NCBI GenBank assembly: GCA_964035545.1
Contig: CAXIUT010000231.1
Span: forward strand, 1 to 18,363
Reading direction: 5' to 3'
Length of the DNA stretch: 18,363 bases
From: Bugula neritina
Lineage: Eukaryota > Animalia > Bryozoa
Positions 3,755 through 18,363 of this stretch are shown piece after piece. Within the stretch, counting starts at the first letter, position 1; each line of letters opens with the position of its first letter. The notes beneath the pieces are model-generated. The model did no database searches, had not been told where the DNA came from, and saw only the letters and a list, made by a program, of their open reading frames with translations. A program made the position numbers and the translations under genes.

Positions 3755-4404
3755 ATGAGTGAAATCGACGACGGTTCTCTAAAAAATTATAAAACCATAA
3801 TTATCGGTCGATCAGCTGTCGGCAAAAGCACTCTTTTGATCCGATATGTCGATTGCTAGTTCAATCCTCAAAAACCTACCATCGGCATCGACTATCGCTT
3901 CAAAAAGGTCAGCCATCATGACTCGACTTTCAATTTATAACTATGGATTCAGCAGGTCAAGAGAGATATCGAACAATAGTGTACAATTATTTTACTTTAT
4001 CAAAAGCAGGAGTCATAGTATTTGATTTAACGAATGAAGATTCATTGAATGATGCTAAGAGTTGGTTGCAAAATTTAGTTAATCATTGTGGTAATGAGAT
4101 ACCTAAAATATTATTAGGAAATAAATGTGATTTGTTAAGTCCTGGAGAGCTGAATGATAAATTATAGAAATACAAGGAGAAGATAAATTAATTAAAAAAT
4201 GATTTTAATTGTTAATTTTTTACTGTTAGTGCTAAAACAGGATAAAATGTTAATGAAGCCTTCAATTATCTAACTAAATAAATTTATAATAGAAATAAAG
4301 TTAGTTCTCCTTAAAATGTAAAAAAAACATAAACTTTTAAACTCAAATCATCATATATATCAGTCCAGGAAGAATAAAAGAAAAAAAAGAAAGGATGCTG
4401 CTGA
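3755..4404 (+). CDS. Rab-family small GTPase (~216 aa) with an apparent one-base deletion at 3944-3947
   Basis: Motifs: G1 GRSAVGKST, effector PTIGIDY, G3 LELW/DSAGQERYR, G4 GNKCD, G5 SAKTGENV, and a polybasic prenylation end KKKKKGCC-TGA. The span is 650 nt; TGG GAT needs one more G than is present (ctatggattca). Confidence 0.92.
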
Positions 4405-7565: not shown

Positions 7566-10530
7566 ATGGGAGCTGCCTAAAATTAGAGCACATACTCTGA
7601 AATCCGACTGAATCATCCCCATCTAATCAACTGCAGAGGAATAACTAAAAATAATCTCACCTATCTCAATACCACCCTCATGTGCCAAAAACCACAGTAT
7701 GAACAATGGAAAAAAGACATAAAAACATTCAAATCTAAAACTCTATAAACATAACATTTATTTCTACCCATAAAACATAAATTCTAAGACGGAGGAGTCT
7801 GCTCAACAACCGGATAATTACAGGTAAATACTGATCTAGTTAGATTGCCTATTAATTTTACCCCAAGTTGCTGTAGACCTAGATTCACGATAGAATGAAT
7901 AATAAGAATAAATTCAGCTAAGCATAACTATGGTATCTTTTATACGTATTGGTATAAGTTCGATAGACGCTTATTTCCCAAGGCATGGAAATAAATGATT
8001 TACAACCGCGTAACATCTTTCTCAATGTTGATCAAAAAGTAAAAGTAGCCTGTCCTCTCTCATGGCCAGGACATCTCTCTCTGTATAGACAAGCTGTCCT
8101 AGAATAGTCTTTCGAATATCTATCACCAGAAGATATTGTCAGATTGAAGTTAGGAGCTCTTGATAATAAGGCCAACTTCTAATCATAGATCTTTTCAATG
8201 GGATTAACTTTATTGTCAGCAAGTTCTTTGCAAAGTTAGAAGGAGTTATATAGAGCTAAAGATCGTGACTTTGATTAAGAATTATTTGGAGCTCGATTGG
8301 CTATTTTTCAACAAGATAAGTCTTACTCTTAAATATATCGATCAGTAGTTTGCAACCTTTTAGAAATGGATCCCTAAAAAAGAATGAATCAAGAATAACT
8401 GACATAATTACTCTTTAAACATCGTTAAAATTTATAAGAATTGAAACCATTGATGTTTGACAATGTTGGCAAAAAACTACAACAATCTCTAAACGGTTTA
8501 TTAAGGATAGCCCCTCCAGTTAAAAATTAAATATCTAATTCAAGTTCAAGAGCATCAAATGTCCTGCCCATCAGCAATAAATACAGTAGACAACAGGAAG
8601 GTAGAGTTTAAAGTGTACCTAATGTTGTCCTTTAAGGAGGAAGTAATCAAGTTAGACCATCTTCAAGGGAAAGAAGGTAAAGTGTTATCAATTATACATC
8701 TAATGGAAATCCTTTAACTACACCTATTTCGCCAAGAAATCAAAAAGGAGGGATTCTGTTTAATATTCCACCGATACATCCAGGAACAAATAATGCTCCT
8801 AAGACTAATAATATGCCTAGTCAAGGACCAAATCAGATGCCAAATCAAATATCAAATCAAGTACCAAATCAAATACCAAATCAAGTACCAAATCAAATAC
8901 CAAATCAAGTACCAAATCAAGTACCAAATCAAGTATCAAATAAAGTACCAAATCAAGTATCTCCAAATTATATGCATAATAATGTATATCAAATAATGCC
9001 GAATCATATCCCAAATTAGATCCCTCATCAAACAAATAATCAATTACCACCTTATCAAATGCACAATCAGATGCCTCCACGTCAAATCATTACTCATGCT
9101 GAACCAATCAGACTACCTAATTCTCATTCTCCCCCACCGAAAGTTGAATTCCACCAAAACATAGTCAGAACTCCTTCTTCTCAAGAATAAATAGCATAAT
9201 CTCTAAAAGCTCAAGCTAATCAGGTTATTTATCAACCATTCAATAATATAAATAGACCATAGATAGCTCAAACTCAAAATCCATAGGGCTATCTTTATTC
9301 TCAAAATAGATATCAAGAAACGATAGGTTAAAGAAGCGGATAGGGCGGATCAGGATTAGGTAATTTATTGATAGAAACTAGAAAAGAAGTCCTTCAATCT
9401 GATATAGGTAAGATAGATAATAACTAATCTAAAAAAATAGCTGATTCATCTGTAATAAAAAAAGAGTATTAAAGTGAGTTAATCATAGCAAAAGATAAAA
9501 AATAATACTAATCTTAAGTTACTTAACCTATTAAAAATTAAATCAATCAATAAATATTCAACCATCATCATCAGTTAAAAAATAAATATCAAGTGTTAAT
9601 AAAAAAGAATAAAGTATCGTTTAAAAAATAAAATAGGTATAAAATAATCAATAAGTTAAAGTTTAATTAAAGGAATAAAAGAAAATAGAGTAACATCAAC
9701 TTTAAAAACAAATATCTCCTAAAGTAAAAGTATGGGGATTTCAAAAAGGAAAAGCAGAAGATAAAAATAAAACAGACAACATCAAACCTTCAGAAACTGT
9801 ACAAGTTAAATAAATAAAAATATATACAAAAAAATAATCAAATAACTAAAATAAATAACTACATAACCAACAAAATTATAAAGAGCTAAAAGAAGTCAAA
9901 GTACTATAAAGTTAAAAAACAAATCAATCAGATGAAAAAATAAACAAGAAGTAATTTGTTATTTAGCCAAAATAACCAAAAGCAAGTAACTATATTCTCA
10001 TCGAAGAACCAAGTAAAAATCCAACAGAAAAAGAATCATAATTACGATCAGATAAACCAAGCTAACCTAAACCTTAATCCTCAATAAACAAATAAGAATC
10101 AAATCAATAAGTCCACTCATAAACTAGAAATAATTTTGTCTTTTTGAGTGTACCTACTGAAGGCGAGTTCGACGATTGCTGGAACGAATTAAAAATAATG
10201 TTCAAAAAACCATAAGAATATTGCAATAAAATCAATGCTGATAAAGTCTTTACCAATGAAAGTTAACGTGGACAATGTTTGAAGATAGGACCAGCATAGA
10301 TGAAAGTTAACTTGAATTATGAACAAGGTAAAATATGGTTATAAAAGTTGCCTAAATCTAAATGCTAGGGTGATTTTTTATGCGGAGTTATTAAAAAATA
10401 AGATCAAAAACATCATATCTGGTTCAATTCATCTATGACCTATAAAAACAAACGCTTTCCTTCAAATTAAGTCATGCAAGAAGGACTAAACATTCTACAA
10501 AAAAACATCAACCTCTCCAAAAGAACATGA
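7566..10530 (+). CDS. Large protein (~980 aa): N-terminal pseudokinase, Pro/Asn/Gln low-complexity repeat region, Glu/Lys-rich linker and a C-terminal globular domain; intron 7824-7843; apparent -1 frame break near 9533-9543
   Basis: MGAA start. Kinase C-lobe motifs IAYEFY, FSEAELWYLL, INDLQPRNIFL, YLSPE, SEIFSMGLTLL and LLEMDPEKRM. Frame 2 reads well to ~9530, then frame 1 (KKEESIVEKIKEVE...) runs to TGA10528-10530. Confidence 0.8.
7824..7843 (+). other. 20-nt spliceosomal intron
   Basis: gtaaatactgatctagttag. It contains an in-frame TGA, and its removal joins the kinase frames. Confidence 0.88.
8828..8959 (+). repeat. Coding 12-nt tandem repeat, 11 units of (C/T)CAAATCAA(G/A)TA encoding (P/S)NQ(V/I)
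   Basis: Directly visible as PNQM PNQI SNQV PNQI PNQV PNQI PNQV PNQV PNQV SNKV PNQV. It generates the three overlapping ORFs in the supplied track. Confidence 0.95.
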
Positions 10531-16216: not shown

Positions 16217-16688
16217 ATGAGATCAAAGAAGGACAAGAACGAAGACTACAGCTTTGATTGTGACCAATTGTCAGATGAATAAGAATCATCGTAAGAAGAA
16301 TACAGGATCAAGTTAAAGAAAACAAAGTCTAGTATTTATCATGAGGAAGGTAACAAGAAAATATCTGATGATAAAAAAAAAAAGTTAATCCAAATGGTAA
16401 CAAAATAAAACTATAGAATAAAATAAGTATTTTATATCATTATTTTAGGCAGGAAAGGCAATTCAAGTGAGTTACAGCACTGCAAAAAAGATATTTACCA
16501 ATTTTAGAGTTAATTTAAAGAAAAAAGAGAAGTTATAATCAAAATAATAAGTCAATAGTCAAAGATGTCGATATTTGACACTCTAGGAAGGCTAAGAATT
16601 TAAAAATAACAAAAAAGGAATTCAAATAATTTCTTCAATAGGAGGCGATACTCAGCTAGATGATCGAAGACAAGACGATTCATAATGA
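16217..16688 (+). CDS. Homeodomain-like helix-turn-helix DNA-binding protein (~149 aa); 22-nt intron at 16427-16448
   Basis: KISDDKKKKLIQMVTKENYRIKE|AGKAIQVSYSTAKKIFTNFR matches the K-I...L-I..V.....IKeAa..l.i.YSTAK.I HTH pattern common in ciliates. Acidic run DEEESSEEEY. First TGA at 16686-16688. Confidence 0.8.
16427..16448 (+). other. 22-nt spliceosomal intron
   Basis: gtattttatatcattattttag; joins the two halves of the HTH motif. Confidence 0.85.
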
Positions 16689-16960: not shown

Positions 16961-16971
16961 AACCCATAAAA
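16961..16971 (+). promoter_or_regulatory. Putative USE/PSE (snRNA-type upstream sequence element) for the downstream ncRNA
   Basis: AACCCATAAAA lies ~50-60 nt upstream of the first helix of the structured RNA, with TATA-like segments between (16973-16980, 16994-16998). It resembles the ACCCATAA element recalled from ciliate snRNA and telomerase RNA promoters. Confidence 0.6.
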
Positions 16972-17019
16972 ATATATATATCAAAATTATCTCTATAAGG
17001 AGCTTAAGGCTATATAAGA

Positions 17020-17204
17020 TTGAACCAAGTCAGTTGTGGCGATCCAAACTATGTACTAAATCATTTGTGCTATCTTGGAAAGGTTCAACAACTATTTGCA
17101 GGGTTGAGCTTCGGTTCCCCTGCAAACTATCCTAGTATTCCATCTCAGGCGGCAGTTGACTCACTCGAGTTGTTGACGTCTGATAAACCCTAGGCGAGAT
17201 ATTT
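17020..17204 (+). ncRNA. snR30: snR30/U17 (SNORA73)-type box H/ACA snoRNA for 18S rRNA processing (5' end approximate)
   Basis: Three hairpins: TTGAACC 17020-26/GGTTCAA 17082-88; TTTGCAGGG 17095-103/CCCTGCAAA 17118-26 capped by GAGC-UUCG-GUUC; CCTAG 17131-35/CTAGG 17190-94 with TCAGGCG 17145-51/CGTCTGA 17177-83. H box AAACTA at 17124-29. The 3' hairpin internal loop carries m1-like TATTCCAT (17136-43) and m2-like AAACCCT (17185-91), followed 7 nt later by ATA at the ACA-box position. Confidence 0.8.
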
Positions 17205-17208
17205 TTTT
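17202..17208 (+). terminator. Oligo-T (T7) tract, possible RNA polymerase III terminator
   Basis: TTTTTTT immediately follows the ACA-equivalent box. T runs are common in this AT-rich DNA, so position is the main support. Confidence 0.5.
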
Positions 17209-17355: not shown

Positions 17356-18124
17356 TCATTCTTTAGGACCATTGATTCCCCCATTCATACAATTTTCACA
17401 ATTACACAAATATGAACATTTAACACCCGTAAAGAAACACTCACAATATTTCTTAAAACAACTTGTCTTCTTGCAATTGCAACCCCTCTTCAACCCAAGT
17501 TAGGATTGCTCTCCCACCAACTCTGTTTTTATATCAAATGCATTTGGATTTTTCTCAAGTACGGCCCTTCTAGCCTTTTGTTTCTTGTCTTAAAAATCAC
17601 TGTTATTTCTGCATTGATAGCAAGAACACCTTTAATTACACTAAAGGCCTTTAGAAAAACACTAGCAATACATGAGCAAACATTTTGATTTTGGACACTT
17701 ACAACTGACTTAAGTAACCTTTTTTCCTACCGGCTAAGCCTAAATGCTCATTTTTTGCACTTATCTACATAAATAAAGAGCTACTCGACCATATATTCAA
17801 GCTATGTTTCCCGCTTTTTTGATTTAAATGATCCCTCATCTCTCATTTAAGAGTAGAACAGCTCCTACTAAGCTAAATTATCAAAAAGATCTTTATTCTA
17901 ATATTTTTATAAAGCTTTAGCTGATATATCTGATTAAAGGCTTATTCTATTTCAAATAAAATATACTTCTGGTTGTTGTATGAACCTCTATTTTGATAGT
18001 GTGTGCCTCCAATACTGAAGCAAGACTCATTGGAATGACGGCTGTTGATTGATATTTTAGGTTAGTTTTTGATATTGTTGAGAGGGTTAGACTGAGCGTT
18101 ACCTTATTAGTATTCAATGTCCAT
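17356..18124 (-). CDS. CRC (tesmin/TSO1/LIN54-type CXC) domain DNA-binding protein, 242 aa; 20-nt introns at 17947-17966 and 17765-17784
   Basis: Two CXC repeats, [33 protein letters not shown] and [34 protein letters not shown], joined by the hinge LEKNPNAF (RNPxAF-like). Confidence 0.93.
17765..17784 (-). other. 20-nt spliceosomal intron
   Basis: Minus-strand gtagctctttatttatgtag; the unspliced frame hits TGA shortly after. Confidence 0.8.
17947..17966 (-). other. 20-nt spliceosomal intron
   Basis: Minus-strand gtatattttatttgaaatag; restores the frame. Confidence 0.8.
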
Positions 18125-18257: not shown

Positions 18258-18363
18258 TTGGGGTTGGGGTTGGGGTTGGGGTTGGGGTTGGGGTTGGGGT
18301 TGGGGTTGGGGTTGGGGTTGGGGTTGGGGTTGGGGTTGGGGTTGGGGTTGGGGTTGGGGTTGG
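18258..18363 (+). repeat. Telomere, (TTGGGG)17 plus TTGG, at the chromosome end
   Basis: Perfect, invariant TTGGGG array running to the end of the window, with the G-rich strand oriented 5'->3' toward the terminus. Confidence 0.98.

Follow-up and report, generated by a model that had tools for sequence, protein, structure and literature searches.

A probable ciliate U17/snR30 gene with its own promoter and an AUA box on a contig of the Bugula neritina assembly

Does the GC-richer island at positions 16961–17208 of contig CAXIUT010000231.1 (assembly GCA_964035545.1, filed under Bugula neritina) hold a gene for the box H/ACA small nucleolar RNA (snoRNA) U17/snR30? The original prediction, made from the letters of this stretch alone (18,363 nt, hereafter the window), proposed a U17-type H/ACA RNA with its own upstream sequence element (USE), an oligo-T end and AUA in place of the ACA box. 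In the follow-up analysis, every sequence feature named in that prediction was found where it had been placed, and the reading as a whole is supported by four distinct metagenomic homologues. The forward strand of 16961–17208 is very probably the gene for a U17/snR30 box H/ACA snoRNA of a ciliate. Its parts are collected in Table 1. The 5' end of the RNA was placed from the promoter geometry and the start of the outer stem P1, and the 3' end 3 nt past the AUA box, within the T run.

Members of the snR30/U17 family are defined by two elements, m1 (AUAUUCCUA) and m2 (AAACCAU), on the 3' hairpin loop's basal side; further criteria are that m2 lies 7 nt before ACA and that m1 and m2 pair with the sites rm1 and rm2 of expansion segment 6 (ES6) of 18S ribosomal RNA (rRNA) (PMC7601244, PMC2664660). 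In the window, m1 is canonical at 6 of 9 positions, and m2 is AAACCCU, followed by AGGCGAG (7 nt) and then AUA, exactly the predicted distance. The composite of USE, TATTCC and AAACC-N9-AYA-TTT was matched in 0 of 200 shuffles of the window. The island itself is real: GC content is 43.8% from 17020 to 17204, compared to 25.6% and 31.6% in the flanks. Folding also agrees with assignment to the forward strand, with a minimum free energy (MFE) of −54.9 kcal/mol (z −2.1) versus −44.8 kcal/mol (z −0.4) for the reverse strand.

To look for relatives, we scanned metagenome contigs with the pattern ACCCATAA-N(150-180)-TATTCC-N(30-60)-AAACC-N9-AYA-TTT, which returned 12 loci. Seven are clear homologues and represent four distinct sequences: L001, L003 (equal to L010 and L011), L006 (equal to L012) and L007. 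All four resemble the window gene along their whole length and share its USE, TATA element, domains and T run. The remaining loci (L002, L004/L008, L005 and L009) were rejected as chance matches, none being matched by a covariance model (R1) that we built with the window excluded, its only input being the four homologues' 3' domains. R1 found the window gene at 17087–17205 (+) with 78.2 bits (E 9.9e-16), its sole match in the window. Open reading frames (ORFs) with TGA as the only stop are much longer in the homologue contigs than ORFs under the standard code, which fits a ciliate origin for these contigs without proving it. When the window was compared with the homologue contigs by tblastx, similarity was seen at the RNA gene alone, and no synteny was detected. 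Two other RNA-like features lie on these contigs: the 3' part of a tRNA at L007:1–55, ∼60 nt upstream of the L007 USE, and a weak SNORD75-like match (23.1 bits, E 0.05) at L006:1407–1468, ∼490 nt downstream of the L006 gene.

Covariation in orthologous loci had been named as a test on which the prediction should stand or fall, and it was found in both domains. In the 3' domain alignment, standard pairs make up 88% of cells, and both sides are changed in 9 of 31 pairs, namely four of the internal-hairpin outer stem and five of the upper helix of the 3' hairpin. Among 500 shuffles, none reached the observed value on four of five measures, and 4 did so on the fifth; sliding the partners by 1–3 columns reduced pairing to 39–50%. 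For the 5' domain, 86% of cells are paired, with 5 of 15 pairs changed on both sides, compared to 22–49% paired when partners are slid by the same distances. Both alignments were fitted to the structure and hence lean towards it, a bias that the slid controls, together with MFE folding of each sequence by itself, serve to check. The structure is conserved, with compensatory changes in both domains.

Table 1. Features of the predicted U17/snR30-like gene, with positions in the window
Feature	Position	Strand	Basis or remark
USE AACCCATAAA, ciliate type-3 snRNA/snoRNA promoter	16961..16970	+	9/10 match to consensus AAACCCATAA
TATA-like box TATAAG	16994..16999	+	23 bp after USE, ~26 bp before first stem
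Predicted mature U17/snR30-like H/ACA RNA	17020..17204	+	~185 nt, both ends inferred
5' domain, Y-shaped three-way junction without pseudouridylation pocket	17020..17088	+	folds and pair count
P1 outer stem	17020-17026/17082-17088	+	part of 5' domain
Small hairpin	17029-17040	+	part of 5' domain
Long hairpin	17043-17079	+	part of 5' domain
Hinge 1 ACAACU, H-box-like ANANNN	17088..17093	+	directly after 5' domain
Internal hairpin	17095..17126	+	outer stem GCAGGG/CCCUGC, UU bulge, inner stem GAGC/GUUC, UUCG loop
UUCG loop of C(UUCG)G tetraloop	17110-17113	+	part of internal hairpin
AAACUA (ANANNA), candidate H box, hinge 2	17124..17129	+	motif fit
3' hairpin	17131..17194	+	MFE fold, leave-one-out model match, covariation
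Lower stem CCUAG/CUAGG	17131-17135/17190-17194	+	part of 3' hairpin
m1 element UAUUCCAU, core UAUUCC	17136..17143	+	5' strand, base of internal loop
Upper stem	17145-17151/17177-17183	+	part of 3' hairpin, above internal loop
CAGU/GUUG helix	17153-17156/17172-17175	+	part of 3' hairpin
Apical stem-loop	17158-17171	+	part of 3' hairpin
m2 element AAACCCU, core AAACC 17185-17189	17185..17191	+	3' strand, loop base
AUA box in ACA position	17199..17201	+	7 nt after m2, ~16 nt from loop top
T7 run, likely Pol III terminator	17202..17208	+	first three U are the putative 3 nt after the box

The predicted RNA would consist of a Y-shaped 5' domain that lacks a pocket, an internal hairpin and a 3' hairpin, with AUA 3 nt from its end, and should assemble with the H/ACA proteins Cbf5/dyskerin, Nop10, Nhp2 and Gar1 as putative partners. 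Three hairpins had been predicted. The hairpin fold is present, except that the supposed 5' hairpin is a three-way junction, and the same Y shape (P1, a hairpin of 3–5 bp and a longer hairpin) was obtained when each of the five sequences was folded separately. The C(UUCG)G tetraloop of the internal hairpin was found as described; across the five sequences this loop reads UUCG, UUCU, GCAA, GCAA and GAAA, on an inner stem GAGC/GUUC that is invariant. GUUGAGC occurs in four of the five, L003 having GGUGAGC. In the 3' hairpin, CAG...UUG is likewise common to all five.

Several observations weigh against assigning this RNA to U17. First, the models SNORA73, snR30 and TtnuHACA7 gave no match to the window gene, at gathering score or at E up to 10, so that the Rfam scan proposed as a check came back empty; the scans returned only noise, namely S_pombe_snR35 (on the wrong strand) and CrcZ (in one whole-window and two local scans). 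The SNORA73 and snR30 models presumably represent animal and yeast sequences. Second, searches of sequencing runs for the gene found it in no run that is on record as RNA, only in genomic contigs. Third, the H box is ambiguous. Hinge 1 (AGAUUG, AGAUUG, AGACUG and AAAUGG in the homologues) has A-N-A in all five sequences, with a sixth base that is G or U, never A. In hinge 2, the predicted ANANNA motif is present in the window as AAACUA, partly overlapping the A-U end of the predicted internal-hairpin stem; the homologue columns read AGAUGA in L003, AGAGGA in L007 and UAAGUC in L001, L006 giving no clean match, and the motif is absent from two of the four. Fourth, the m2/rm2 duplex would have only 4–5 bp, versus 5–6 bp for canonical m2, when paired with 18S rRNA of other organisms. 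Finally, the columns that read AUA in the window read ACA in all four homologues, and one sequencing run (X3) holds a second U17-like contig of 176 nt that is 86% alike over 17102–17199.

The last two points bear on the strongest rival explanation, namely that the window gene is a copy in decay or without function, its ACA having mutated to AUA, and that another locus of the genome supplies the working U17. The second X3 contig resembles L003 in its upstream letters (..GGTTCTAAATGG..) and ends in ACA plus a T run. It could be a paralogue, or a second ciliate present in the sample could be its source. Read depth also speaks against decay, the AUA copy being covered more than 100-fold in X3 compared to 6-fold for the second contig. 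The AUA form is present in runs under three organism labels, with no box variant listed in four DNA runs, in some of which coverage is only few-fold. Moreover, promoter, helices, m1 and m2 cores, box spacing and terminator are all intact in the window gene, and in Tetrahymena AUA takes the place of ACA in 6 of 28 H/ACA snoRNAs, some of these 6 being guides for conserved modifications (PMC3273799). We consider decay improbable and reject it. Because of these Tetrahymena snoRNAs, the AUA reads as a working variant of ACA: the substitution that had been predicted sits at the exact ACA position, and boxes of this kind are already known from Tetrahymena. It directly precedes the T run, and with AUAUUU as its end the RNA would retain the 3 nt that normally follow the box.

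Is the gene then U17, or could an ordinary pseudouridylation guide carry U17-like words in its pocket by chance? The 3' hairpin is indeed of H/ACA type, with the top of its internal loop ∼16 nt from the box, and the failure of the Rfam U17 models would suit a guide. However, the bases that are conserved are not those on which a guide depends. The UAUUCC core (17136–17141), directly above the lower stem, and the AAACC core are each invariant in five of five sequences, and both are basal. The distal bases, beside the upper stem and hence in the guide position, vary on both the 5' strand (AUC, AAC, AAA, UAC and UAU) and the 3' strand (GAU, GGC, GAC, GAC and GAU). Invariant basal and varying distal bases are the reverse of what a guide would show, and this pattern is that of the snR30 binding mode (PMC7601244, PMC2664660). 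Canonical m1 AUAUUCCUA and m2 AAACCAU are present in L001 and L006, and L007 has AUAUUCCAA with AAACCAU; we count these three as having the full pair of elements, and ACA follows m2 by 7 nt in all four homologues. The pocketless 5' domain is also unlike a guide, and chance placement of both cores would occur in ∼1e-5 or less of H/ACA RNAs, a rough, uncomputed estimate. A guide snoRNA is thus very improbable and was rejected, leaving U17 as the favoured identity. Rejected too, with practically no probability left to it, is a small protein-coding ORF (17020–17193, 57 aa) or chance GC-rich patch: a reading frame does cover the region, and under a code whose sole stop is TGA long ORFs are frequent in this DNA, but 1-nt insertions and deletions separate the homologues from the window, helix substitutions are compensatory, the region lies between a USE and a T run, and spurious ORF calls over GC-rich noncoding RNA genes are a noted problem in Tetrahymena (PMC3273799).

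How, then, would this U17 dock on 18S rRNA when its m2 departs from the canonical AAACCAU? The original prediction called for a matching change in the rRNA, a GGGUUU-like site complementary to AAACCCU. We compared 58 distinct eukaryotic ES6 sequences, all from other organisms and present as contaminants in bacterial assemblies. UUGGUU is found in 58 of 58, 31–36 nt after GGAAUA, and GGGUUU in none, and the variant rm2 was therefore rejected. A change within the RNA offers another explanation. In the homologues with canonical elements, the lower stem is CCUAU/AUAGG, and its top pair joins the first U of UAUUCC to the A of AAACCA. The sequences of the window and L003 (GUAUUCC/AAACCCU) have an inserted G (17135) ahead of UAUUCC and C in place of the A at 17190, which gives CCUAG/CUAGG; the sixth base of m2 is C in these two sequences and A in the others. 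Because the inserted G can pair with C 17190, the difference in m2 would be intramolecular and call for no altered 18S site. The alternation of G-C with U-A further indicates that the terminal bases of 'm2' and the initial ones of 'm1' belong, in these sequences, to the lower stem and do not contact the rRNA.

For m1, the predicted exact complementarity to a conserved 18S word held: the window m1 can form an 8-bp duplex with AUGGAAUA (−8.5 kcal/mol), compared to 6 bp for canonical m1. One caveat here is that the rm1 word was part of the 18S search pattern, so its presence in all 58 ES6 sequences is no evidence in itself. In the mechanism that we propose, m1 UAUUCCAU and m2 AAACC would pair with rm1 AUGGAAUA and rm2 GGUU[U] of ES6 in the pre-rRNA, in the inverted, non-modifying mode of snR30, and this docking would allow the early cleavages that release 18S/17S rRNA. 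Reverse complements of four conserved motifs (GGUUGAGC, CAGUUAGC, AGCUAUUG and GGACUGAG) had no conserved site in the recovered 18S loci. No ribosomal DNA (rDNA) is present in the window, and the 18S search in viral contigs gave no match. The ES6 collection itself comes from at least 120 contigs (L013–L132) that are labelled bacterial or archaeal yet contain eukaryotic 18S rDNA; these are contaminants, and many look fungal by eye.

Turning to expression, the predicted promoter and oligo-T end are both present and conserved in the homologues, in which T4–T5 directly follows ACA. The USE consensus of Tetrahymena and Paramecium is AAACCCATAA (PMC3273799). From the start of the USE to P1 there are 60 nt in the window and 60–63 nt across all five genes. 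In the window and in L003, L001 and L006, the TATA-like element lies 33–35 nt from the start of the USE, so that USE and TATA are separated by 23 bp in the window and 23–25 bp in these three homologues; in L007 it lies 24 nt from the USE start (a 13- to 14-bp gap). In Arabidopsis genes transcribed by RNA polymerase (Pol) III, the spacing is 23–24 bp, and the choice of polymerase is set by USE–TATA spacing in plants and ciliates alike (PMC8287931), the ciliate rule being one that we take from the literature. A role for Pol III has been proposed for the monocistronic snoRNA genes of Tetrahymena, which are followed by T tracts, albeit without experimental proof (PMC3273799). Given the 23-bp spacing, the T run and the published ciliate promoter data, transcription by Pol III is a reasonable inference, and one towards which we lean. 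The type-3 promoter, with its TATA-like box 23 bp downstream of the USE, would start transcription near 17020, probably by Pol III, and termination within the T7 run would yield an RNA of ∼185 nt. An independent gene of this kind had been singled out in the original prediction; the USE and T tract are there, but such an arrangement is already known for Tetrahymena snoRNAs (PMC3273799).

The closest known systems are the snR30/U17 RNAs (SNORA73, E1), including Tetrahymena U17 and Oxytricha Onc90. The window RNA shares their H/ACA layout, pocketless 5' domain and internal hairpin, the location of m1 on one strand and m2 on the other at the base of the 3'-hairpin loop with m2 7 nt before the box, and a predicted complementarity to rm1 and rm2 of 18S ES6 (PMC7601244, PMC2664660, PMC3177221). 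It differs from canonical members in m1 (GUAUUCCAU instead of AUAUUCCUA), in m2 (AAACCCU instead of AAACCAU), in an extra G-C pair on the lower stem and in having AUA rather than ACA. The claim that the RNA is unusually compact did not survive: at ∼185 nt it falls among its homologues (182–191 nt), human U17 having 207 nt (PMC7601244) and the RNAs of T. thermophila and yeast ∼240 and 606 nt, respectively. Vertebrate U17 (intronic) and yeast snR30 (an independent Pol II gene) belong to the same RNA family and have the same presumed role in 18S processing; unlike these, the window gene is a compact stand-alone unit with USE, TATA box and T-run terminator. In gene layout we see no difference from the monocistronic type-3 snoRNA and small nuclear RNA (snRNA) genes of Tetrahymena and Paramecium. 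Tetrahymena H/ACA snoRNA genes have the USE AAACCCATAA 53–179 bp upstream, T tracts downstream and occasionally AUA (PMC3273799).

One Rfam family deserves comment. RF02314 (TtnuHACA7) is a Tetrahymena H/ACA snoRNA of Andersen and Nielsen 2011, and U17 does not appear in the family name displayed. Its consensus resembles the window 3' domain in the order of its elements, namely a GGuugaGc-type hairpin, CUAUAUUCCUa, AaacCAu and ACA. With a length of 130 nt, the family would cover the 3' domain only; L006 matches it weakly over positions 784–915 (25.5 bits, E 0.33), whereas no match of the window gene was obtained at E up to 10. Because the consensus holds m1, m2 and ACA in order, we infer that RF02314, though named otherwise, represents the 3' domain of Tetrahymena U17.

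What is the DNA on which this gene lies? The window is AT-rich (28.6% GC), and its longest ORFs reach 807 codons with TGA as the sole stop, compared to at most 119 under the standard code. At 18258–18363, up to the end of the window, lie ∼17 tandem repeats of (TTGGGG)n. Therefore, the window is the end of a ciliate macronuclear chromosome. Given this telomere, the U17 gene is ∼1.05 kb from the chromosome end. In run X3, one contig departs from the window after 17162 and continues with CCAACCCCAACCCCAACCCC. These letters are those of the C-rich telomere strand, whose orientation here is not the one that a chromosome end on the right would have, and the contig may have arisen as a chimera during amplification. 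Beside the U17 gene, an ORF at 17359–17796 (−) under the TGA-only code is Cys-rich with CXC-type spacing, and another at 3922–4401 (+) resembles a Rab-type GTPase (DSAGQERY, C-terminal CC). A second exact copy of ACCCATAA lies at 7766–7773 (+), just upstream of a long TGA-only ORF (7835–10144), with no obvious GC island, hairpin set or T run downstream.

Five sequencing runs contain the gene sequence; their type is not on record, and between them they carry three organism labels. Four of these were examined and hold genomic contigs of near-identical strains, ∼1% different. Within the gene, only two strain variants were found in the four DNA runs, 17042 A>C in the 5'-domain junction and 17113 G>U in the tetraloop (UUCG to UUCU), both at unpaired positions. 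Two differences in the 185-nt gene versus ∼21 in ∼1,400 nt of flank are too few to judge purifying selection. In run X2, loose ends at 16591, 17270 and 17833 all start with GATC, as at the ligation junctions of DpnII/MboI Hi-C-type libraries.

U17 has been described before in Tetrahymena (PMC7601244) and, as Onc90, in Oxytricha (PMC3177221); the T. thermophila RNA is that of Atzorn et al. 2004 (AJ544686), as cited in PMC7601244 and PMC6315972. On this assignment, 17020–17204 with its promoter is an additional member of the already described ciliate U17. A more specific idea, which we put forward only tentatively, is that of a branch-specific U17: a Pol III type-3 gene whose RNA would have a rebalanced rRNA-docking site, with an 8-bp m1/rm1 duplex, an m2/rm2 duplex of only 4–5 bp and an extra lower-stem G-C pair, together with an AUA box, and in which the invariant GAGC-loop-GUUC hairpin (preceded by GUU in four of five sequences) would be a lineage-specific functional element. 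If true, this would be the first U17 for which synthesis by Pol III and function with a shortened m2 duplex have been shown.

None of these results changes the understanding of how U17 works. U17/snR30 is universal and the one H/ACA snoRNA that is essential for 18S rRNA production, and since standard Rfam scans miss the gene, it would stay unannotated in this genome. The alignment of five sequences and the covariance models provide a means of finding U17 in similar ciliates. They show which parts are fixed, namely the UAUUCC and AAACC cores, the 7-nt box spacing, the GAGC/GUUC hairpin and the CAG/UUG helix, and separate these from the parts that are free to vary.

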